A stretch of 64,000 bases of DNA from the sequence record NC_070998.1; one strand, written 5' to 3'. Both the position numbers and the translations under genes were made by a program. Positions 3,960 through 52,339 of the stretch are shown in pieces (within the stretch, counting starts at the first letter, position 1; each line of letters begins with the position of its first letter). The notes under the pieces are model-generated. The model was not told where the DNA came from, made no database searches, and saw only the letters and a program-made list of their open reading frames with translations.

Positions 3960-4409
3960 ATGTTGAAATATCTTTATGGAAAACTTCCAGTTACTTCCAC
4001 ACTTAATCAAGGTTCTAAGGAAAAAATAGAGAGGGTTAGCGCCCTCCTCTTTTCTGTTCGCTGTGATGAGTTTCAACACCGCGACATGGAATTTGCGACG
4101 GCCTTTATCCCTTTCAACGGTGGCTTTGGAAACCTCCACCCAACTGATCCAGCCCGTCATTTTTATGGCGAAAGTATTTCTTGTAATGTTCAAACTGACC
4201 CTGACGTCATCGACAATATGATAGAGTTGAAAGAAACTGGAAATGTTTTTTACACCCACCCTAATGATAGTAAACACCGAGTGTTTGCCATTATCGAAAA
4301 GGGTGTAGGTTACCCTTGCAAAACCGGACGTGCTGGAGATTGGATTCCATGTTCTTTGCAAGAGATGGAAAAACTCTGTAACGAAGAACGCTCTACATTC
4401 CCTTATTGA
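3960..4409 (+). CDS. hypothetical protein, paralog of 4426-4845
   Basis: AGGAG RBS; shares HRDM, GGF and F(Y/F)GxSISCNV motifs with next ORF. Confidence 0.75.
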   Translation: MLKYLYGKLPVTSTLNQGSKEKIERVSALLFSVRCDEFQHRDMEFATAFIPFNGGFGNLHPTDPARHFYGESISCNVQTDPDVIDNMIELKETGNVFYTHPNDSKHRVFAIIEKGVGYPCKTGRAGDWIPCSLQEMEKLCNEERSTFPY

Positions 4410-38634: not shown

Positions 38635-41600
38635 TTAATTCATCCTCACCCCACTTTGTTGTTTAGCGAGACGATTGATACCTTCATTCAGAGTATCGAC
38701 GGATGTGATCAACCTAGCCATTGCAGCTGTGTTGGCTTCATCGTTAACAGCCAGAGGACCGTCAGGTAACTTGAGTTCTACCGGAACTTCTTTGGTAGAT
38801 GTCTTCATTACATTAGACTGATTAACAGCAGGGGTATTAGTTGCTGTATTACTCGGTTGTTGCGGAGCAGCAATACTCGGTGGAGGAGCCGGTACCTTAG
38901 GCTTACTAGCAGGAGAAGCTGTAGGAGTACTAGTTGGTGAAACAGGTTTATTAGAAACCTTAGCAGTATCTGCCGCGTTCATCAAACTGTTGATGTCCTC
39001 CTTAGCATCTGGGTTAACAGCTTTGTTACCATCGACGTGATCAGGTGGAACATTACTATCTGGAACAGAAGGTAATTGGGCTTGTTCGTTACTAATCTGA
39101 ACAGAGCCCTGTTCACCAGTATCTGGTACAGATATATCTCCCCGGTTAAGACGATCCAAGTACTCTTGATAGTATTGCCTACGTTCATCTGAGCCAGGAA
39201 CGGGATTACCACCATTGATACCACGCATGGCGGTTTCAAAATCACCTGTCTGGGCAATAGAACGCATAGCTTTACTATTAAGTAAGAATCGTACAGCAGA
39301 TTCAGCCATTACGTTAGGATCTTCAGACACGATACGTGGATTGGATACAACATCAATCCCAGTTTCTTGTTTGAATTTCTCGTAGTTAGCCTTGCCTGTT
39401 AACTGGAACAGTCCTCTACCACGGTATAACCAACCGTCTTCCGGTTTAGTGTTACCAAGCGTCGGACCTTTGGGAGCTCTACCGTAAACGTACATGGCGC
39501 GTTCAGGCGGAGACATGGCTGCAACCTTTTCAGCTGTGGCCATATCAGGAATATTACGGAAGTACCTCTTCAGAGTAGGGGCAGACCAGTTGGTATTCTC
39601 TACAGTAGCTGAATAGTTCCCTGTTTCCTTCTTAGCCATAGCCAACGCAAGAGCCAACATCTTCTTATCAGTTACACCAGCTTTTAACAAGTGGTTTAAT
39701 AAGAGCTGTTCACCTTGAGCAGGATCCATCTTGATCCCTTTGTCATCACCTGCTAACTTCTGGAACTCTGGATTAAAAGTATCTGACCAACCAAGGTTTA
39801 CATTCCCGCCTTGTAAGTTGTAGTTAGTACCAAACCCAATACCGTTGTTATTACGACCATCGGCAGTAAATGAATTACCAGTTCCACCACCGTAAATACC
39901 AACATTACCAGCAGAGACATTTCGGTTTTTACCATACACTTTATCAAACAGTGCATTGGTATTAACCTGGACTTGGTTAGAGTCGATTTTACTTCCGTTT
40001 ACTTTCTCATCGTAAGTAAGTGAACGCTCATCTTCTAACTCAGGTTCTTTCAGTCTTGCTTTTGTGGCCTTAGCATCCAAAGACTTAAGATACTTCTCAA
40101 CACGATCAGGCCAGCTACCAGAATTGGAATTTTCAAATGGAGATACTTTCACATCCCATACTGACACTTCTTCTTGCTGATATATAACCCGAGTTTCTGA
40201 TAAGAATCTAGCCAACTTAGCTTTGTTGGTATCAGAGAGTGATCTCCAACCTTGCTTAGGTAGCTGATTACGGAGACGTTTCATTTCCTTAACGTATTGT
40301 TGTAATACAGGTAAGAAACGATTCTGGAACCACAGATGCCAGTTAGACTCACCATTAGTTGTTTCAATCCTAAATTGCGCTTTAAACAGATTAAATACTC
40401 TAGTAGGGTTACCACTAAAGACCGCTTCCGTTCCAAGCGTGTTAATCAGATCTTCACAATAACGTTCCAGTCTAAGTACGGCATCTACTCGCCAAGGCAT
40501 GTTGTCGATGTTACCATAAACACCTAAACGGACCATAGTAAATGGATCGATAGCTGTATTAGCATCTTTATGCAAATCAGAGATATCGATTTCTCTTACA
40601 GCTTGCGGTGTTTGGAACTTACGATCAACTTCTTCCTGAGCGAGTTTATTAGCTCGATCTCCAAAACTATTACTGAACCACCCTGCAAGACCGTCCGGAG
40701 TCTTTTCGTTGAGCACTCTGCTACGACGCTCTACATCTGTTTCTAGTTTGAACTCTTCTTCAGGAGTGGGGTATTTCTTACGAAGTTCTGACAGTAAAGA
40801 ACTAACCAAGTTCTCAGTCATCACTCGATTAAGAATACCTTCCCTTGGATCTATCTGAACTTGGACTTCATAAGGGAATGGATCCAAAGTACCCATAGAT
40901 GTTCTTACACGTTCACAGAGTAGTGTAACTTCATAGCTCTCTTTGCGGTCAAACTCGTTGATGTCACCATGTCTACCTACGGATACTGCTACAGCGTACA
41001 GCAAGAACACTGGTTTGAAACGTGCATTAAACCAAGTGTGAACTTGATCAAATGGAACACTATCTCCACCTTTAGCAAACTGCTGGAGGATCTGTGCAAC
41101 AGGAGCATTTTGGGTAAAACTTGCCCTGTTATTAGCAATAGCCAAATGAGGAATTAATGCTTGTTCCAACTTAGAGACACGTTTAGCCAAATTACCGTCA
41201 ATACTCTTGATACCGTACTGAGCATAACGAATGCGACGTTGTAGTGAATCAGGAATCTCTTTAGCGCTAACTCCACCAGCACCATCAATGTAAGCTTGTG
41301 CTTCACGACGGTCAGTAAAGAAGGTTCCGTCAGGAGCCCAGAATACACCCTTGTTATCGATAAAGTCACTAGCGGCTTTTGGTAACAAGAATTCCTTAGC
41401 TGTTTTCAAAGCAAGTGTAGGTAAGAAGAAATCAGAAGCAGTATCGACAACTTTCTCCATAGTAGTTAACTTTGGACCATTATCGTCTTTACCATCTTCG
41501 TACACATCTCCATCAGTGGGTTCATCTTCACCACCAAAGGCATCGGCTGCGTACATCCCGCCACCTACTACAGCACCAGTACCTAGTAAAGCAGCCAACA

Positions 41601-44600
41601 TCTTACCACGACCACCCAACTTGCCAAGCGCTCCACCGATCTTACCTCTTACCCCTCCTTTACCAGCACTACCTAATGCATCCCCTAAACCACCTGCTGC
41701 TGTTTTAGCCATGGTGGCTTTAGTCAGAGCAGTGAAACCCCACTTCATTAATTTGAAGATGGGAGAAGCTACACCCAACACTCCCGAGAACAACATACTA
41801 CCGATAGAAGCTAAGCGTTTTCCAGAGTTAACCAGAGAACCCATAATCAAACCACCTAAGGTTCCAATGGGATTCTTAATAAGACGCATGGCAAAATCAC
41901 CCATCCCTCCCATCAAGCTAAAGAGTTTACCGAAGATGCCTTGCTTTTCGGTTTTCTCTCCCTCTTTAGGTTCTTTCATTCCTTCAGCAATATCGATGAT
42001 GGAGTCCTGAACCTTTTCTTGTTTCTCTGCTTTCTCTTGACGGATCTTATCTTCCAGAGAGTTTAACCTCAAACCTTTAGTGATAGGCGACCCTATTGGA
42101 TCACTTTCACCATCAAAGTTATCTGGAATATCAATACCAAACTTCTGAGACAATATAGCATAGATACGATCTAAACGACGTTCAACACCACGGTTACTAC
42201 TTTGGCCTGGTTTACCACCTACAGAACCTTCTGTATCACTCTGTGGACGATTATAACCGAACTTACCTAAGATGGTATCAAGACCTGATCTAGCCAGTCC
42301 AGCGGCTGTTTCTGCTAATCCTGAAGCAGCACTACCTACAGCTCTTACTTTCTGACCAGTTGCTGTGATAAGACCTTGATCAAACTCAATTTGAGAGATA
42401 ACCTCATTCCCTTCACTGTCATAAACAGGTCCAGTTATTTCGTTCCATCCCCAAATAGGTTTAATAGAACCAGTGGTATCTTCAATTGAGTATTCACCTT
42501 CTTTGAACTTCACAGCTCTAAGTCTAGGAGTCTTCTCACCTTTCACATATACATCTTGCTGGTAAATGAGATTCTTACCCATCTCCATCACAGACTTAAT
42601 ACGTGTTAGTGGATCAACAAAGTTATAAGCACCAACTACGGCATCTTTGAGCTTAACAATGCCAGAGAGAACCACCGCTCTACCATCAGCACCAAAGATT
42701 TTACCACCTAACTCCTTAATAGTTATGGTAACCTTTTCAGCTGCATCAAAGATTGGACCTTTAATATCACGCCAAGTGTTTATCACACGACGTTTTACAG
42801 CATCGTAATAATCACCAGCTTTTAACTTAGATGACTTAAGAATCGGGTTGCCGTTCTCATCAAGAATATCTTCTTCATCAGAAGGTTCGTCACCTACCGC
42901 ATTCTCATTGTCAACCCTACCCCAATGTTGTACTAAAGCACCTAGAGCGACACCACCTACTCCAGCGGCTGCTGCTAGAATTGGATTTTGGATAAAATGA
43001 GAACTAACACCACCTAAAATAGAACCTAAGATTAATGGCTGGTTTTGCATAACCATTTCAAACCCTTTACCCAAGATATTAGTTGGGAGGATTTTCTTAA
43101 GTCTATTAATAACATCAAAGTTATAACGATCAGCTTGACGTTCCTCAGTTTCTGACTTGGCTTGCTTGTTAAACAATTTACCATCTTTAACAATAGTCAA
43201 AAGTTCTGTAAACAACGCATCCATATTAGAAGTTGAAGTTGCGATCTTATCAATGTTGGTAATTACTTCACCGGTATGTGTGTCAAAGTAAGCCTGTGGT
43301 CCCTTAGAACTTTCTGTATTAACTTTGGAAGTATTATCAACCAATCTGCTAAGCTGAGCTGACAAATCGCTTATGGAACTATTGAGTTCGTTAAACGTAT
43401 TGTTAGTAGAAGCTGAACCAGTTGGTGATTTAGGAACGATGAATCCACCTTTACCGTCACTAACAGGTTTCTTGGAAGTGGTATCGAACATACCCTTCAA
43501 TTGAGGGTTATTAGGGTTCTCCATGAACTGTCCCAACCTTTCGTGGAAAATGTCCATGTTAACTTTCTCTACCCCAGCTTCAGTGTAAATGACACCAAGA
43601 TCTCTAAGGAGTTGTTCATTACCAGTAGAACGAAGCATGTCGATGCGCTCTGCTACATTGGGGAAAAGTTCCTTCATGTTAGCAGCAGTGGCAGAAGCTA
43701 CGTTAAGGCGCTCGTTACCTTCATTACTACGCATGTCGGTCATGCGCTTAAGTTTATCAAAACCCTTAGCAGATTTAAACTCAGAAACATCTTGGTCATT
43801 AAGTCCAAAGTGACGTTTCATTACAGCATGGATTTCTTTTTGGTGAGCGCCAGAAACGTTAGGAATATCACCAAGATAATAGAATGGGTTAAACCCTTTC
43901 TCTTGATCGACATCTTTAGCGATCTGTTGGGCTAGCGCTTTTCTAGCACCAGCGCTAAGAGAACGCTCTGTATCCAGCCCGTCAACCATCTCCAAAGCTG
44001 CTTGAGCGTAACGACTAAAGTCTCCGTAAGGCATTAAATCAGCTTTAACAGAAATGCGCTTTTCAGAATCAGTTTGGAACTGACCACGCATATAGTTATA
44101 GCTTACACCTTCGATATTCTTTTCGCCAGTACGAATCCCTTCGGTGCTGGTTAAGATCCTACTAAGCAACCCTGGGATAACCTCATTGAGTGTGATATTG
44201 TTAGTCTCTTTCCAGATACCTGGATTATTGAGATCTTTTACATTACGTTTATTAAGGGTATATTGAGTGCCACGAGATTTAGTAATCTCTGACATGAAGC
44301 TGTTAACGGAAGCTTTAGCTTTGTTGGTGGCTGCATTCTTAGCAACCCAAATAGCCTTTGGAATAGGTTTCTTACCAGGAGGAAGTTGATCTAAGTAATC
44401 TTGATAATCAAGATACTCCATCTCGTCCATAGCTTCGTAATCTTCAGCAAGGTAGTTAATTAACCCAACACCAGAAGTAGAAGCGTAAGAAGCTTTATTA
44501 CCAAAGTTAGTCAATTTGCCAAACATTTCTTGGAACTGCTTAGCTTCTTTGGGATTTTTAGCTGCTAGCTTATTAATCCAATCTTTACCTTTACCACGTT

Positions 44601-45678
44601 CAAAGAAGTAAGGAATATTGGAAACGAACATACTACCGAGTTGTTTGCCGATTAGATCACCAATCATCCCTTTGGACATCGGCATTCCATCTGACATGTC
44701 TAACATATCAGCAATTTGTTCTAAAGCAAAATTACCACCTTGATAACCTTCTTGTCTAGCCGACTTACCAAACTTATCCTTAATTAAACCAGTGAGTCCA
44801 CCTACACGTTTACCTATTGTGCTAAAAAGCTTATTTCTCATAAACTCTTTAGAAGCAGTAAAGTTGGACGTCTTTTGGTAATCGCTCATCATACTTGCTT
44901 TTTGAATCTTTTTCAATTCAGCAATTTCAGTATGAATTCCTTTCTCCATAAACTTATAGTACTTGACGTTAGAAACGTAAGTTTTAGCTAATAAAGAAAG
45001 CTTAGCCTGATCCATTCGAAGTTGGACGTTACGTTGGTAGTTAACCAGATCACGCATTCCAGATTCGATGTTAACGAGTTGTCTATTACCAGAAGAGATA
45101 CTCGCGGTGATCATCCCGCCAACATGAGCAGACATGGTATTTAATGTTTCACCTAAAGCTGTGAACATTCCTTCTTGAGCTTCAAGAGAGCGATCAAGCG
45201 CAGCAGCAACATCGTAGTCACTAGTTTCTTCTATAGCTAAACCAGGAGCTTCATAACCACCTAATTTCTCCCAACTAGAAAAGTCTTTCTGGGAGAAATT
45301 CTCGAGCTCATTTGTAATTGAACTGGGCATTCTTTCGCCCATTTTCTTTGACAGATGACCCGCAATGCTTTGTAACGATTTAACAGAAGAAGCATTTTCT
45401 TCTTTAAATTCTGTTTTTAATTCGTCAAATCTACGACCAGCCCAGCTGACCCGATCTAACGCTGTGGAGAATGATTTAGGAAGAATAGTACGAAGTGTTC
45501 GCATTCTTGCTTCGCCACTTCCAACTGTTTCATCGACAATCCCAGAAAGGAATCCGGAGGCCATCCCTCCGACAAACCCTTTCTTTGCATACGGATCCAT
45601 ATCAAAATCCATATCAAAGTCGAGATCTCCACCAAAGGGATCATCATCCCAGTCTAGATCATAAGTATCACTTGCCAT
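38635..45678 (-). CDS. large tail protein / tape measure with C-terminal GH19 peptidoglycan hydrolase (phiKZ gp181 / EL gp183 equivalent)
   Basis: about 2350 aa; KETG, EN.N.S, GNT..EDGW.YRGRG.FQLTGK.NY, INGG GH19 motifs; start placed at MASD behind GGGGG RBS. Confidence 0.8.
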   Translation of the reverse strand: MASDTYDLDWDDDPFGGDLDFDMDFDMDPYAKKGFVGGMASGFLSGIVDETVGSGEARMRTLRTILPKSFSTALDRVSWAGRRFDELKTEFKEENASSVKSLQSIAGHLSKKMGERMPSSITNELENFSQKDFSSWEKLGGYEAPGLAIEETSDYDVAAALDRSLEAQEGMFTALGETLNTMSAHVGGMITASISSGNRQLVNIESGMRDLVNYQRNVQLRMDQAKLSLLAKTYVSNVKYYKFMEKGIHTEIAELKKIQKASMMSDYQKTSNFTASKEFMRNKLFSTIGKRVGGLTGLIKDKFGKSARQEGYQGGNFALEQIADMLDMSDGMPMSKGMIGDLIGKQLGSMFVSNIPYFFERGKGKDWINKLAAKNPKEAKQFQEMFGKLTNFGNKASYASTSGVGLINYLAEDYEAMDEMEYLDYQDYLDQLPPGKKPIPKAIWVAKNAATNKAKASVNSFMSEITKSRGTQYTLNKRNVKDLNNPGIWKETNNITLNEVIPGLLSRILTSTEGIRTGEKNIEGVSYNYMRGQFQTDSEKRISVKADLMPYGDFSRYAQAALEMVDGLDTERSLSAGARKALAQQIAKDVDQEKGFNPFYYLGDIPNVSGAHQKEIHAVMKRHFGLNDQDVSEFKSAKGFDKLKRMTDMRSNEGNERLNVASATAANMKELFPNVAERIDMLRSTGNEQLLRDLGVIYTEAGVEKVNMDIFHERLGQFMENPNNPQLKGMFDTTSKKPVSDGKGGFIVPKSPTGSASTNNTFNELNSSISDLSAQLSRLVDNTSKVNTESSKGPQAYFDTHTGEVITNIDKIATSTSNMDALFTELLTIVKDGKLFNKQAKSETEERQADRYNFDVINRLKKILPTNILGKGFEMVMQNQPLILGSILGGVSSHFIQNPILAAAAGVGGVALGALVQHWGRVDNENAVGDEPSDEEDILDENGNPILKSSKLKAGDYYDAVKRRVINTWRDIKGPIFDAAEKVTITIKELGGKIFGADGRAVVLSGIVKLKDAVVGAYNFVDPLTRIKSVMEMGKNLIYQQDVYVKGEKTPRLRAVKFKEGEYSIEDTTGSIKPIWGWNEITGPVYDSEGNEVISQIEFDQGLITATGQKVRAVGSAASGLAETAAGLARSGLDTILGKFGYNRPQSDTEGSVGGKPGQSSNRGVERRLDRIYAILSQKFGIDIPDNFDGESDPIGSPITKGLRLNSLEDKIRQEKAEKQEKVQDSIIDIAEGMKEPKEGEKTEKQGIFGKLFSLMGGMGDFAMRLIKNPIGTLGGLIMGSLVNSGKRLASIGSMLFSGVLGVASPIFKLMKWGFTALTKATMAKTAAGGLGDALGSAGKGGVRGKIGGALGKLGGRGKMLAALLGTGAVVGGGMYAADAFGGEDEPTDGDVYEDGKDDNGPKLTTMEKVVDTASDFFLPTLALKTAKEFLLPKAASDFIDNKGVFWAPDGTFFTDRREAQAYIDGAGGVSAKEIPDSLQRRIRYAQYGIKSIDGNLAKRVSKLEQALIPHLAIANNRASFTQNAPVAQILQQFAKGGDSVPFDQVHTWFNARFKPVFLLYAVAVSVGRHGDINEFDRKESYEVTLLCERVRTSMGTLDPFPYEVQVQIDPREGILNRVMTENLVSSLLSELRKKYPTPEEEFKLETDVERRSRVLNEKTPDGLAGWFSNSFGDRANKLAQEEVDRKFQTPQAVREIDISDLHKDANTAIDPFTMVRLGVYGNIDNMPWRVDAVLRLERYCEDLINTLGTEAVFSGNPTRVFNLFKAQFRIETTNGESNWHLWFQNRFLPVLQQYVKEMKRLRNQLPKQGWRSLSDTNKAKLARFLSETRVIYQQEEVSVWDVKVSPFENSNSGSWPDRVEKYLKSLDAKATKARLKEPELEDERSLTYDEKVNGSKIDSNQVQVNTNALFDKVYGKNRNVSAGNVGIYGGGTGNSFTADGRNNNGIGFGTNYNLQGGNVNLGWSDTFNPEFQKLAGDDKGIKMDPAQGEQLLLNHLLKAGVTDKKMLALALAMAKKETGNYSATVENTNWSAPTLKRYFRNIPDMATAEKVAAMSPPERAMYVYGRAPKGPTLGNTKPEDGWLYRGRGLFQLTGKANYEKFKQETGIDVVSNPRIVSEDPNVMAESAVRFLLNSKAMRSIAQTGDFETAMRGINGGNPVPGSDERRQYYQEYLDRLNRGDISVPDTGEQGSVQISNEQAQLPSVPDSNVPPDHVDGNKAVNPDAKEDINSLMNAADTAKVSNKPVSPTSTPTASPASKPKVPAPPPSIAAPQQPSNTATNTPAVNQSNVMKTSTKEVPVELKLPDGPLAVNDEANTAAMARLITSVDTLNEGINRLAKQQSGVRMN

Positions 45679-45703
45679 ACATTCCCCCACTTAGGAAATA
45701 GCG

Positions 45704-47581
45704 ATGAGTAGACAACCTACTAACTTTACGCTGCTTGATCCTAAAACGTTTCCAATAGAACTCATGTCACCCGTGACAGTAGCAGATTCGTTTGAAGGTC
45801 AAACCACTAACTTACACGAAGACGGACTCTACTCGACCAGGATCTTTGGTCGAGTAGGTACTGATGAACGAGATAAAACCGAATCTTACATTAATTCCTT
45901 ATTGCCCATTTTCAATCCCACGTATTTTAAAGCATTAGTGCAGTTAAAATCACTTTACTTAGATATAGTAAAGGGTAAGGCATATGCTGTATGGGATGAG
46001 ACAGAACGTGATTTCATAAAATCTAACGTCCTGGAAGGCGATACAGGATTTGCGTTTTTTATGACTCATTTTGGTGAATTAGATCCAAAACCAAATCAGT
46101 CTTTTAAACGAACTCAGAAGATCACTTTGGTTAATAATTTCCGTGATCGAGCTTTGAATAAACACATTCCAGTTATTCCGGCGGGGATCCGAGACATTGA
46201 AATCGGACCTACTGGATTAGTTACTGAAAATGAGATTAACGATCTTTATCGTAAATTGATTTTCCGTACTAAGTCACTGACTACCAAGAACCCTGATCCA
46301 CTTGATCCAGTTTATGATAATATTCACTGGGGAATGCAGGAGTCTTTGAACAACATTGACCAACATCTCTTTGAGTTACAGGAGGGTAAACGAGGTTTCA
46401 TGCAGCGTCGAATGAGCCGACGTTCTATCCACTCTGCAACTCGTAACGTGATCGTCTCTCGTAAAGTCTCTGTAGAGAATATGGATGATAATGTCACTGG
46501 CGATCCTAACTCCACTTTTATTGGGATGTACCAAGCACTACTTGGCTATAACCTAGTTGCTACACACGAACTTCTTAACGGTTTCTTATCTGAAGTATTT
46601 ACTCCTGGTTTGGATAAAGCACGTCTAGTGGAACCTAAGAGTTTAGAGAGTGCTTATGTGGATGTAGATCCCTACACAGTAGATAAGTTTACTTCTGCCG
46701 ATGGAATTGGTAAACTCTTTAATGGGTTTAGTGACCCCAATGTTCGTAACCGTCCTATTAAGGTAGCTGGTCATTACTTAGGTTTACTTTATGACGATGG
46801 TAAAAACGTTTGCTTAGTTCATGATGTAAATGACCTAGGTGAAGGAATGGATAAGAAGTATCTCCATCCTGTTACCTATATGCAATTCTTTTATATCCAG
46901 ACCGTAAAAGCAATTGAAAAGAAGATGTTACAAATTACTCGTTACCCAATTACTGGGATAGGATCCATTGTACCTACACGAGTGTTTGTTCTTCCAACTA
47001 CAGCCACGTCAGAATCAAGAACATTGATTGACATCGATGGTAGTAAGTTGGATAGTTTTCACTTCTTTCCAGTGTGGACTAAAAATCCCAGTTACTTTGA
47101 TGGGATGAGTATTAGTAACGTACGCTTAGCAGCTGCTGGTGGTGACTTCGACGGTATTTCTGTTTGCCGCTTTTAGTAGTAATACTAATCGAATAAGTGC
47201 GGAATAAAGCAAGGAATCTCTCCATTTAGAGATAACTTGAACCGAAGGCTTACTGTAAATGGTAAGTCAGGGGCAGAGCGTAGATAGTGAACCTCTTTCA
47301 TTAAAGAGAATATAATCTATCCAAGAGGCCGCACCATCCTACTGGGATGAAAACGTACGCCGATACCCGGAGCGATCTGGGAGTGAAGATAAAAAACTTC
47401 ACATTAACATTTGGACCAACTATCAGCCAACAGCATTCAAGCTAAAGATTCAGTAGAAGAAATTGAGACTTTGTTTGGTAAACGTATATTCTATATTTCT
47501 GGAGCAGGTGACTTCCTATATGACCCTGTACAGGAACCACACGCGTTCCTTTTACGTTCATTGACCAATGGATTATCGTAA
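45704..47581 (+). CDS. rpoC: virion RNA polymerase beta-prime subunit, catalytic part (phiKZ gp180-like); spliced join 45704..47155, 47414..47581, 539 aa
   Basis: EGKRGF, RNVI, RYP, GGDFDG; splicing restores DFDG-D QLSANSIQ and a 55-aa exon 2 whose stop overlaps the next ATG. Confidence 0.9.
47156..47413 (+). mobile_element. group I intron (258 nt, no ORF) in RNAP DFDG/D motif
   Basis: 5-prime exon ends in U (GACGGT), intron ends in G; P1 CGGU/GCCG; P3 GTGCGG 47197-47202 with CCGCAC 47329-47334; Q-like GTCAGGGG; P8/P9-like hairpins. Confidence 0.85.
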
Positions 47582-50500
47582 TGCAAGAACATCCAGTAAA
47601 CTTTGACGAACTTAGCGGGCTAGAGGGTTTGTTATACTCTCAGTTCGTTAAACTACATGGTACACGAGAACGTGCTAATGATGTAGTGAATCCACGATAT
47701 CAAGTAGTCGGTGATATCATGTTACCTCGTAACAGTCTCATTCATTACCAGGGAAATATTCCTGGTGAATTGGGACCTAGTAACACCGCTGCTTTTATTA
47801 GTAACTATGACAAACGTATTAACATCTTTTTTAATGTTAAGTACGAAACACCTTTGGGAACAACTAAGATTGTTCCTATTCAGTTGACTAAGTTGATCAA
47901 GCAATATGAGGGTGGACATTACCTTTATACCCGTGCTCGTCAATACCAAACTGTAATTCACAAAGAAGGTGAATTACTGGTCAACAACTTAGCCATTGGT
48001 AAGATCCCTGTTCAGTATCGCAGACAAACTGTATTTACCCCATTCCAACGTTCCTATAATGAACTTTACACATTAATGGAGTCAGTGAATGAGTTTAGTC
48101 AATACGATATTCATCAGTTTGTAGAGTTTAAACTTCCACGTTCTTTCCCTTCTTATAAAACGTTAGAACTTAAATTTGAAAAGTATAAACGTTTCTTTAA
48201 TAGTGAAGGTGTTATTGAGAAATACGAGAAGGAAGCTCTAAAAGAATTCCAGGCCGAAGAGTCTTTCTGGCTATTAGATCTATTTGGTATTCTGATTGGT
48301 TTTGAGAATAAACAATACAGTTTGTTTAATCGATTGAATGACCGAGCTAGAAGTCAACTAGAATTGATCTTTAGTTATAACGGTGTGTGTTGGATTGCTA
48401 ATCTTCAAACACTGATCAATTTGATTGGGTACGATGATAAACCAGAAGACACTTCTCCCCGTCCTATTAAGTTTAACTACTTCAAGCGTTTCTACCTTGC
48501 TTTGATTTCTCTGGTGAGTCCGCTTTCTGAAGAAGTTGTGGAAGATAGCTATGACCAACCAGAAGAAACCGCCAAAGAAGAGGTGGTGGCAGATCGATCG
48601 GAAAAAGGAGAGAGAGGATCTGGACGAGAGTCTGAAAACAAGTCCCCTCTGGTACCTAGCACTACTCCTGGCGGCTTGGCTGATCTTTATGCCAGCAGTA
48701 AGGGAACTACTCCTGCGGTGTCTGATACCCCAGGAGCAAAAGGAGAGAAGACTACTGAAGGAACACTTCCTGGGGATTCCGAATCCGAGAATGACCCAGC
48801 ATCAGCTGAAAACTCTGGTAATTCCCCGGAAGAAGAATGGGGTGCGGACATAGACGATAGTGTCTTTGAACGCGCCAGCATCGAACAAGCCACCATAGTT
48901 AACTCTGAAGAAGCTTATTCGCCAGTTAGCACGATCAATCGCATTCTGGAACGTAAGGCAGCCAGGGGACAATTAACAACCAAAGAGAAAGAGTATTACA
49001 CTAACGCAAGTGTTTCTTATTTGGACATTGAGTTTGGTGGTAGACTTCTAGCTGAGATTGTTGATATCAAACCTGAAGACTTGGTGATGAAACCTAAAGC
49101 GTTTGCACCTAAGTCGGAAGCTGTTACAGATGAGTCTGTATTGCGTTCTAGAAGCATGGAACTCACTAATGGATATGTAGAACAATTCCTTGAACGAGAT
49201 ATCATGGGAGCGGTTCTTGCTGTTCAGAACGGCGGCACTGCTTTACTGGATCTAAACCGTGAAACTATTATCACTGCTGATTCCAAGTACGACGTTTACA
49301 AAATGAAACTTCAGCCTGTGGATAACGGCAATCAGTCTACTAGACAGTTCCGTTTACCTAAGGTAGCATCTGACGGTAGTTTTACTATCAACGGGGTTAA
49401 ATCTTACGCTCAGTTGGTCCGTATGGATCTTCCGGTTAGAAAGATCAATCCGGTTAAGGTAGCCATTAGTTCTTATTACGATAAGAAACTGATGATTGAA
49501 CGTTCTGCTTATAAAGTAGACGATTACAATCATTGGCTTAAGACTAATATCATCCAGAAGAGTTATGAAGATAAATCCATTACAGTTAAATTAGGTTCAT
49601 TCAAATCTGAGCTTAAAGAAGTGTGCTGGTATTACTCGGTATTAGCTTCTCGCTTTAAAGAGATTACTGTTGGTGGTTTGGAATTTAACTTTGATACTGA
49701 ATCTATTTTGGTGAAACACCCTAAATGGAAAAAGTATTGTAAAGGTGAAAGCTGGGTCATTGGTGATGAACACGGAGTTCCTGTACTAATCGATAACAGC
49801 GGTTTGGTAATGATCGATGGTGTAGAGAAAGGTTATATCGAAGAGATCCTTCGGTTACCTATGGCTAAAGCTCCAGTCCCTACTGCAACTGCGAACATTA
49901 ACGGATATAAATTCCCTGTAGTGGTGGTTCTTGCTTACTGGATCGGTTTTAGCGAACTAGTGAAACGCCTCAAACCCACTCATCGCGTTGTTGAACCAGG
50001 TACTCGCCCTATGCTTAATGCTAATGAGTATATTGTTCAGTTTGCTGATGAGCGTTTGATTCTTGACCGTCGAGATGGATTGAGTACTTTGATCTTCTCA
50101 GGACTGAGAAAGCTAGATGGTTTAGCAAACTTCTCCAAGGCTCAATTGGATGATCCTAACGTATGGTTCAGCTTGATTAATGATAGTCGTGTTAAACCAT
50201 CTCATTTTAAAGAGATGGATTTGATTTACGATATGTTTATTGATCCCATCACTGCTCGTGAATTGGAACGTCGTGGTTATCCTCTCATTATGGATAAACT
50301 AATCATCCGGGCCGTAGAAATGCTTCTTAACAACGAAGCAGAACACGAAGTAGAGATTGCTGAACAACGTTTGGTTGGTTTCGAGAGATTCCCTGGTCAC
50401 GTCTATCGTGAACTTGTTAAGTCTACCAGGCAGTTTAGGAACAAACCTAATACTGGTAAGAAGACCTTTGACTTAAACCCAGAAGCTATCATGATGAATA

Positions 50501-52339
50501 TCCTGACTGATAGCAGTATGCAACCAGTTGAAGAAGTCAATCCAGTCCATCAACTGAAACAGCAAGAAGAAGTTACGTTTGGCGGGACCTTTGGTCGAAG
50601 TGATCAAGCAATGGTACGTCGCACACGTGGTCAATTACCAAGTTACGCAGGGATCATCTCTGAAGCTGGTAAGGACTCAGGTAAAGTAGGATTTATCTCT
50701 TATCTAACTTCTGATGCCAAGATTGTTGACTATGCTGGTAACGTGGATGTGACCCAAGAAACCACCAATGCAGGTCGTGGTTCTGTAACGGCTAACTTAC
50801 TTTATGGTACAACACGCGATGACAGTAAAAGGTAAACACAGCGTCGACGACTTCGACGTTACTGCCCTTACACTTAGAAATGAGTGTTTGCATTAACCCT
50901 TAATTGCTGGGAAGTACTCAAAGATGCTCTTACCGAAACGGAAACCGAAAGGTTATATGGAAAGGTTTGAAAAGTAGAGCGGAGAGACAGTCAGCAGCGG
51001 AGCGTCTAAGTATATTCGTGATGAATAGATATGACGAGCGTTCAACGACTAGGGGTGAAACTCCCCGTAGCTGGAACAAGGAATGTTCCTACCAAACAGG
51101 GTTACCTTACTGTGTTGCTGAAGAAGCAACTAGACAGTTGGTTGAAATATAGTCTGCTCCTTATAGTGATATAGGGCGGGTGCTAGGTATCGCACCGGGT
51201 CTTAGGATAAGACTGGACATAAGGCGTTGTTCTCAGGTGTTCAGCTAAGTCAATGGATGGCTACTGATAGTTACGTTGCTAACCCTATTAGAACTCCTTC
51301 TGATAGCGTAGTAGCTTATCGTAACTCAGAACTCTATTGTTCTTATGCTAAAGAAGTGGGAACTATTACTGCTATCACTCCTGACGGGATGACTGTTAAG
51401 TATGATAATGGTAGTGAAGAGAAATTCCCACTTGGCTATGAAGTAGGTAAAGGTGCTGGTGAGTATCACAAACATCTTAAAATCACCGATATGAAAGTTG
51501 GTGACAAAGTTGAGAAAGGTGATGTACTTGCTTGGGATGATTGCTTCTACACTCGGGATTTAACCAATCCAAAACGGATTGTTATTAAGCTTGGGACAAT
51601 GGCTCGTATTGCATTGGTAGAAGATCAATTTACCTTTGAGGATTCCATTGGGATTACTCAGAAGTACGCAGATCTTAATACCACGCCATATCTCAAAAAC
51701 AATGAGTTTAGAATAGGTTATGAACAAGCCATTAAACTCTATGTCAAAGTTGGGGATAAGGTAGAATACGATCAAATATTAGCTGATGTGATGGATCCTT
51801 CTTCTGCCATGTTTGAAGAGGAAAGTGTTAATTCCATTGCTGGTTTGGATCGTCTTGGTATTAAACAGATCAAAGCTAAACAAGCTGGTATAATCACTAA
51901 GATCGATGTTATCTATAACGGTGACTTAGATACGGCAGAAGAGTCTTTGAAAACATTCATTCAGGAACAAGATAAGCTACGTGCTAAGAAAGCTAAGTTC
52001 AGAGAACTTGCTGCTACTAATGGGAACGTTGGTGGTAACACATCAGTAGGTAAGTCAAAGGTCTATCCCAATACAGCAGCAGTAACTATTACCATCGAGA
52101 GTAAACTCACCACCACAACTGCTGATAAGTTTGTAGCGGGTAACCAGATGAAAGGTACAGTAGGGTTTATTTACCCAGATCCTATTTATACTGTTGATGG
52201 TCGGGAAGTTGATGTTAAGTTCTCTTTGAAGTCTTTGCTTAACCGAATGGTATTAAGTCTTCGTGATAAACTGGTAGCTAATGAGTTGAACCATGTTTAC
52301 ACTAGTCGTATGATGAAAAAATATGGGAGATATGAATAA
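47581..52339 (+). CDS. rpoB: virion RNA polymerase beta subunit, N-terminal/middle part (phiKZ gp178-like); spliced join 47581..50833, 51225..52339, about 1455 aa
   Basis: NPVHQLKQ, GKDSGKVG, DDSKR/SLFSGVQ (cf. DDANRALMGANMQ), TFEDSI, DKF...NQMKG motifs. Confidence 0.9.
50834..51224 (+). mobile_element. group I intron (391 nt, no endonuclease ORF) in RNAP beta gene
   Basis: P AATTGCTGGGAA 50902, Q CAGTCAGCAG 50988, R GTTCAACGACTA 51040, S AAATATAGTC 51145; U at 5-prime and G at 3-prime splice sites; ACAGCG can pair with exon 2 CGTTGT. Confidence 0.92.

Follow-up and report, generated by a model that had tools for sequence, protein, structure and literature searches.

A putative group I intron lacking an endonuclease gene in the virion RNA polymerase beta-like subunit gene of Aeromonas phage PS1

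The interrupted gene and its product

The DNA analyzed here is a stretch of 64,000 nucleotides (nt) from sequence record NC_070998.1 (the window), of which bases 50300-51800 are 100% identical to Aeromonas phage PS1 (MN032614.2), a jumbo phage of 237 kb belonging to the genus Ferozepurvirus; phage PS2 also matches. On the + strand, the ortholog of phage phiKZ gp178 is interrupted by 391 nt (50834-51224), which very probably constitute a group I intron of subgroup IA, lacking an endonuclease gene, in the gene for a C-terminal beta-like subunit of the virion RNA polymerase. The insertion carries the signature of a group I fold and has exact boundaries, its removal restores a single reading frame, and the motif which it splits is equivalent to a catalytic motif of the bacterial beta subunit. 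In the PS1 record no intron is annotated and the gene is divided among three hypothetical proteins: PS1_0229 (1084 amino acids (aa), 47581-50835, + strand, stop codon TAA), PS1_0230 (a small open reading frame (ORF) of 132 nt within the intron, 51021-51152) and PS1_0231 (370 aa, 51227-52339, + strand, TTG start).

PS1_0229 and PS1_0231 are the ORFs of the two exons. Exon 1 (47581-50833, + strand) comprises codons 1-1084 and the U that opens codon 1085, ending ...DDSKR + U, while exon 2 (51225-52339, + strand) begins with the CG that completes this codon, followed by codons 1086-1455 and the stop codon. The T of the TAA codon that closes the exon 1 ORF is base 50833, the proposed final exon base, and adding C51225-G51226 to T50833 makes a codon in frame with the ORF at 51227-52339. 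When U50833 is joined to C51225, a frame of 1455 codons without internal stop is obtained, reading ...YGTTRDDSKRSLFSGVQLSQ...; the predicted ligated junction is ...AAAAGGU|CGUUGUUC... and the predicted product across it is ...YGTTRDDSKR-S-LFSGVQLSQ....

Four relatives, phages AVP1, ACP1 and pAEv1810 and the Logan metagenome contig L011, lack exactly these 391 nt and possess one ORF of 1455 aa. The three phages showed approximately 91% DNA identity, with 73% of the query covered in two pieces and the insert missing. In AVP1 the gene is one uninterrupted coding sequence, AVP1_0120, of which residues 985-1084 are 98% identical to the last 100 residues of PS1 exon 1 and residues 1086-1455 are 96% identical to exon 2. 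Exon 1 thus extends to residue 1084 and exon 2 picks up at 1086, so that residue 1085 is supplied by the split codon U|CG. In L011 the identity of this gene is 94.9% at the DNA level and 97.6% at the protein level, the insert is again missing, and the encoded sequence ...DDSKRSLFSG... equals the predicted spliced product of PS1. The boundaries were set from protein comparisons, since a MAFFT alignment of PS1, AVP1 and CF8 across the insertion misplaced AVP1.

The identity of the protein was investigated using homology searches and gene order. Residues 875-1075 of phiKZ gp178, ending in HDDPKR (1070-1075), are 34% identical to the last 200 residues of exon 1, and the PS1 neighbourhood is syntenic with phiKZ gp181, gp180, gp178 and gp175: both phages have, in order, a giant endolysin on the opposite strand, the gp180 ortholog, the gp178 ortholog and a head protease. 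A Pfam scan of exon 1 and of the upstream gene returned no match, and exon 2 gave a weak match to RNA_pol_Rpb2_6. A profile-profile comparison was needed because phmmer, run with the intact AVP1 protein against the PDB, yielded only weak matches to mycobacterial RpoB as its best (E about 0.12). Using hhalign, columns 975-1229 of a profile built from 18 full-length homologues were aligned with residues 513-825 of E. coli RpoB at 92.5% probability (E 4.8e-7). This alignment places RDDSKRSL (1079-1086) opposite HDDANRAL (E. coli beta 673-680), making R1084 equivalent to R678 and D1081 to D675, and sets TFEDS of exon 2 opposite E. coli NFEDS (E813/D814). The FEDS and GNQMKG motifs are both encoded by exon 2. 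In the N-terminal approximately 970 residues of the 1455-aa protein, similarity to beta was not detectable.

Beta R678 is universally conserved and, together with R1106, makes up the basic pocket which receives the gamma-phosphate of an incoming nucleoside triphosphate (PMC13198411, PMC5856549). The phiKZ protein gp178 is a virion-packaged beta-like RNA polymerase subunit (PMC11620839), in agreement with the phiKZ annotation, and the virion RNA polymerases of jumbo phages consist of at least five chains, with beta's N-terminal and C-terminal pieces being separate (PMC7598289). Because of this division, and on the evidence of orthology, the PS1 protein is regarded as the C-terminal beta-like piece, the counterpart of gp178, and is predicted to be packaged in the virion. 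A preliminary description of this DNA, made from its letters, had already placed the junction at T50833-C51225, with a product of about 1455 aa, had aligned DDSKR-S-LFSG with the bacterial DDANR motif, whose arginine was said to contact the nucleotide, and had named the product a virion RNA polymerase beta subunit. The open frame and the 1455-aa proteins of the relatives, the hhalign result, the documented gamma-phosphate contact of R678 (PMC13198411), and the orthology and synteny with phiKZ gp178 and gp180 all agree with it, as does the presence/absence comparison that it had called for, in which relatives without exactly 391 nt keep the frame intact. Its term "beta subunit" holds insofar as the protein is beta-like and carries beta motifs; the protein is not a whole beta but a C-terminal piece with an N-terminal extension of approximately 970 aa.

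The finding corrects the annotation. The records of PS1, PS2 and CF8 list an essential virion RNA polymerase subunit as separate "hypothetical proteins" and those of EL, FishSpeaker and MIZ-Pa99 list the same subunit as two "beta subunits", while the true product would be a single chain of approximately 1455 aa.

The ribozyme fold and the splice sites

The P, Q, R and S elements of a group I core were located on the + strand in the correct order and with zero mismatches, in agreement with the preliminary description, which had called them textbook examples. The P element, AATTGCTGGGAAG, lies at 50902-50914, the Q element, AGTCAGCAGC, at 50989-50998, the R element, GTTCAACGACTA, at 51040-51051 and the S element, AAATATAGTCT, at 51145-51155; R and S contain the two strands of P7, GACUA (51047-51051) and UAGUC (51150-51154), respectively. 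The Rfam model Intron_gpI (RF00028) was matched over its whole length (1-253 of 253) by bases 50836-51176, with a score of 35.5 bits and an E of 1.7e-6 in a search of 4.8 kb with an E-value threshold.

A core alignment was constructed from eight introns occupying the same site, those of PS1, CF8, Klebsiella phage phiKp_32, Raoultella phage VB_ZK_P1 and four metagenomic contigs. Two further homologue contigs, L014 and L016, end within the intron, and P0059 is known as protein only. Against the same Rfam model, L012 scored 52.7 bits and phiKp_32 51.9 bits, both above the gathering score, followed by L013 (45) and CF8 (41.6). From the alignment, RNAalifold recovered P3, the P5 extension, P6, P7.1, P8, P9, P9.1 and P9.2, with compensatory changes in 40 of 81 pairs. 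For the canonical group I structure, which includes P4, P5 and P7, compensatory double changes were found in 39 of 79 pairs and nearly all cells were paired across the eight introns. P4 and P7 were almost invariant, P7 having one G.U pair. Most of these helices were also recovered in the minimum-energy fold of the single sequence.

The helices of PS1, all on the + strand, were placed as follows. P1 (50831-50866) is formed by exon GGU plus intron A (50831-50834) and UGCC (50863-50866), with U50833.G50864 as the wobble pair at the cleavage site; its loop holds a small variable hairpin (50842-50847 / 50853-50858). The same P1 was obtained from six homologues folded individually, in which the pair adjoining the wobble varies among A-U, U.G and C-G. 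A P2 hairpin (50870-50887, ACACU / AGUGU) was predicted in every homologue, with differing sequences. The strands of P3 are at 50895-50900 and 51098-51103, compensatory changes affecting three of the six pairs. The P4-P5 domain (50902-50998) contains the P4 strands at 50905-50910 and 50991-50996, P5 (50917-50919 / 50984-50986) and a P5a-c extension with a GAAA loop (50926-50980). P6, P6a and P6b occupy 50997-51041 (compensatory changes in 8 of 13 pairs) and P8 occupies 51104-51142 (7 of 12 pairs). Between the 5' strand of P7 and the 3' strand of P3 lie P7.1 (51052-51066), which covaries, and P7.2 (51073-51089), and the structure is closed by P9 with a GUGA loop, P9.1 and P9.2 (51159-51214). 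Subgroup IA was reportedly defined by Michel and Westhof in 1990 by two additional helices, P7.1 and P7.2, lying between P7 and the 3' strand of P3, and the presence of both helices points to membership of the modelled PS1 fold in this subgroup. Subgroup IA is usual among phage introns, the classical examples being T4 td, nrdB and sunY and the SPO1 DNA polymerase intron; PS1 differs from these in that its host gene encodes a subunit of a multisubunit RNA polymerase.

The intron follows U50833 and its terminal G is base 51224. A junction placed one base upstream, with G50832 as the last exon base, an intron of 50833-51223 and exon 2 starting from G51224 to give DDSKR-A-LFSG, would be compatible with the PS1 sequence taken by itself. 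The boundaries read RG|U...G|GC in PS1 and in five of the six other complete homologues at this site, so that either register keeps the frame, and both Ser and Ala are natural at the position after the Arg, Ala being the residue of E. coli. In the intron-less homologues the residue following KR is T in 43 cases, S in 20 and A in 13, a distribution which does not discriminate between the registers. The shifted register would, however, end the 5' exon in G rather than in the U of the conserved P1 pair. That U directly follows the Arg codon in all eight introns at this site, and in six homologues the independently predicted P1 sets it opposite a G (GGU+N / N'GCC). The 3' end of the L012 intron, ..AAUAAG|CUC, has a single G, and the shift would leave that intron ending in A; the register U|...G|C is fixed on this account. 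The intron-less allele L011, with its 97.6% protein identity, also has Ser at the junction position. The shift is accordingly judged quite improbable in PS1, and it is only through the homologue L012 and the U.G rule that it would be excluded.

The case for splicing

In the mechanism proposed, the transcribed RNA would fold into the P1-P9.2 ribozyme, and an external guanosine would attack after U50833, held in P1 by its U.G wobble with G50864. The freed exon end would then attack after the terminal G51224, joining AGG-U to CG-UUG to produce a single mRNA that encodes 1455 aa, with ...DDSKR-S-LFSG... across the junction. Without splicing, the UAA that arises at the splice site would halt translation, leaving a product of 1084 aa from which the segment bearing the active-centre motifs FEDS and GNQMKG is missing. 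There are strong grounds for expecting that the PS1 intron splices, because the fold is conserved, the break falls inside an invariant catalytic motif and exon 2 has no credible start. In phiKZ, an endonuclease cut in the gp178 gene abolishes virion production (PMC11620839); that PS1 is an isolated, viable phage was, together with this need for the phiKZ gene in making virions, counted in favour of splicing.

Several observations weigh on the other side. The case for splicing in PS1 is drawn from sequence. The 35.5 bits of the PS1 intron are below the Rfam gathering score of 50, the fold of the single sequence has a z-score of only -2.2, and P1 is short, with 4 base pairs and just three exon bases. 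A P10 pairing with the 3' exon could not be drawn consistently; on manual inspection P10 was convincing in L012 and weak or absent in PS1, L013 and L015. Group I introns with the endonucleases gp56, gp72 and gp179 were predicted in phiKZ (Mesyanzhinov 2002, as cited in PMC10914365), and long-read transcriptomics revealed no spliced reads for them under the conditions tested (PMC10914365), so that splicing of jumbo-phage RNA polymerase introns is not to be taken for granted.

These transcriptomic data are also what lends some colour to the idea that the PS1 intron no longer splices, or need not, and that chains of 1084 and approximately 370 aa assemble as a further split of the polymerase. Jumbo-phage RNA polymerases are after all naturally divided into at least five chains (PMC7598289), and GenBank annotates two ORFs at this gene in PS1, EL, FishSpeaker and MIZ-Pa99. 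A two-chain break at this point would nevertheless separate the nucleotide-binding Arg from the next residue of an invariant motif. For exon 2 the only start is a TTG with AAGG two bases upstream, there being no in-frame ATG with a ribosome-binding site. The 39 compensatory pair changes across homologues imply selection on the RNA. Finally, PS1 and CF8 have their stop codon created precisely at the splice site; in the other homologues the frame runs on through 2 to 24 unrelated codons. Two unspliced chains are therefore considered very unlikely. Still less probable, to the point of being nearly negligible, is a chance resemblance or an insertion other than an intron, such as a degenerate mobile element separating two genes. 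A default Rfam scan of the whole window at the gathering threshold did report nothing, as such a reading would have it; against this stand the full-length model match (E 1.7e-6), homologues scoring above the gathering threshold, the base-exact absence of 391 nt in relatives with the frame restored, and the covariation which supports the fold.

Should PS1 form a phage nucleus as phiKZ does, splicing of the putative intron would lack coupled translation.

Related introns, mobility and the neighbouring insertion

An intron at the identical point, ...GAC CCA AAA CGG U|, was found in Klebsiella phage phiKp_32 and Raoultella phage VB_ZK_P1, where it is likewise not annotated as an intron. The core of the phiKp_32 intron is 72.6% identical to that of PS1 over 86% of the PS1 intron, and the core of VB_ZK_P1 is 73.3% identical over 80%. 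Both introns are 1434 nt long, unlike the 391-nt PS1 copy, and carry a 350-aa ORF with HNH_3 and NUMOD1 domains between the 5' splice site and P3; in phiKp_32 this ORF starts downstream of the 5' splice site and stops just before P3. The sole ORFs of the PS1 intron are one of 82 aa with a TTG start (50904-51152) and PS1_0230, both overlapping the ribozyme core; a Pfam scan of the former gave no match. With no endonuclease gene inside, the PS1 copy is not a mobile intron of the endonuclease-carrying type. Because an HNH-bearing copy occupies the identical site in the Klebsiella and Raoultella phages, the intron probably arrived by endonuclease-driven homing, PS1 holding an endonuclease-less derivative. 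PS1 and CF8 are 85% identical in the intron and 73% over the whole 1.5-kb region that includes it, which would fit either a more recent shared origin of the intron or a strong constraint on it. A search of IMG/VR viral contigs with the exact 26-base core motif found no match.

The closest published case is that of phage PhiPA3 (Birkholz et al., Science 2024; PMC11620839), in which a putative group I intron holds gp210, an HNH nicking endonuclease. That intron interrupts the virion RNA polymerase beta gene gp211/209, the phiKZ gp178 ortholog, directly after a conserved Asp pair (E. coli D675, phiKZ D1072), and gp210 nicks the intron-less phiKZ gene, giving PhiPA3 a competitive advantage (PMC11620839). 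PhiPA3 thus resembles PS1 in the host gene, in the catalytic DDxKR motif and in having a putative group I intron, and gp210 belongs to the same HNH nicking endonuclease family as the protein which the PS1-type intron encodes in phiKp_32. The PS1 site differs in lying approximately 10 nt downstream, one base past the Arg codon, and the PS1 copy is without an endonuclease gene; the competition phenotype is known for PhiPA3. The predicted phiKZ introns are also comparable, as group I introns at catalytic motifs in RNA polymerase subunit genes of a jumbo phage. They occupy other genes or sites, phiKZ gp178 being uninterrupted, unlike in PS1; gp180, whose ortholog in PS1 is the upstream gene, is the site of the gp179 intron, the core of which has blastn similarity to the PS1 intron. 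The PS1 intron is of a known kind, given the PhiPA3 precedent. It had gone unannotated until now and is no new kind of element; with the PhiPA3 case in print, it is less novel than the preliminary description implied.

Other occupants of the DDxKR motif were noted. In phage EL (L009:2318-2740) an intron is at the PhiPA3 position, exon 1 ending in ...HDD, and in the metagenomic relatives P0093, P0095, P0110 and P0120 the motif is likewise occupied directly after DD. A third position, DDQH|R, may be used in Shewanella phage FishSpeaker (L007:1790-2145). The intron cores at these positions are related (blastn 75% over 77 nt). Among the best 120 protein clusters of the gp178 family, approximately 17 stop at the motif, approximately 10 of them after DDxKR (the PS1-type site) and approximately 7 at or just after DD (the PhiPA3/EL type); interruption at this motif is thus common. 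The PhiPA3 case of a "weaponised intron" is in this way extended: the motif is occupied at two positions, separated by approximately 10 nt, in phages of Aeromonas, Klebsiella, Raoultella, Pseudomonas and probably Shewanella, and in metagenomes.

The segment L011:6224-6256 (Logan ERR12726233) corresponds to window bases 50804-50833 / 51225-51227 and represents an intron-less allele of a near-identical phage. Just 5' of the insertion site, 12 of 30 bases differ in L011, compared to 0-3 per 30 in the preceding 270 nt, and all of the changes are synonymous. They look like synonymous recoding of a homing-endonuclease target. It is conceivable, albeit a speculation towards which we lean rather less than away, that the DDxKR codons are a battleground of co-infecting jumbo phages, the PS1 intron being retained because it shields the gene from HNH homing endonucleases of relatives and L011 gaining equal shelter through recoding. 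If so, the two insertion points 10 nt apart would mark competing intron lineages. Intron-plus, intron-minus and recoded alleles in near-identical phages offer a natural system for the study of intron homing and immunity between jumbo phages.

Upstream of the interrupted gene lies the gene for the N-terminal beta'-like subunit (45704-47581, + strand), whose stop codon overlaps the ATG of exon 1 (TAATG). It is 31% identical to phiKZ gp180 (E 5e-79). Based on comparison with AVP1_0119 (539 aa), it contains an insertion of 258 nt (47156-47413) which splits the catalytic Mg-binding motif DFDG|D. This insertion has U|...G| boundaries, covarying hairpins and a drawable P1 containing a U.G wobble; Intron_gpI gave no match to it even at E<=10 in PS1, CF8 or L013, and P3 and P7 could not be placed by eye. 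It may be an atypical group I intron or something else. The preliminary description had called the 391-nt element the second group I intron of the operon; that element very probably is one, and the 258-nt neighbour is not recognized as another by Rfam. No sequence similarity was detected between the two insertions. PS1 possesses both and AVP1 neither, L011 has the 258-nt insertion and not the 391-nt intron, and L015 has the intron and not the insertion. Because each occurs without the other, in L011 and L015, their distribution supports independent gain or loss, and the suggestion of separate invasions made earlier is borne out to that extent.

In other phages a canonical group I intron was observed 9 nt upstream of the point of the PS1 258-nt insertion, at GAD|FDGD, in L012 at 71.5 bits, in phiKp_32 and in phiKZ, with gp179; the loci are L012:1962-2274, L004:208-538 and L018:8159-9786, the last being the phiKZ gp179 region. 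The annotated phiKZ gp180 coding sequence ends in ...GAD, and gp179 lies within that intron. When the 391-nt intron was searched using blastn, three places were hit in the PS1 genome, including outside the window, as well as an intergenic one in AVP1 (OP889247.1 178984-179051) and in ACP1, phages otherwise free of the intron. These hits suggest further related intron cores elsewhere, possibly in non-virion RNA polymerase genes, as in PA7 (L006 ~4000-4260, after ADFDGD). Divergent from the RNA polymerase genes, an ORF of 2351 aa (38635-45690, - strand) carries the annotation of a putative endolysin and is the positional counterpart of the tail-associated endolysin gp181 of phiKZ.

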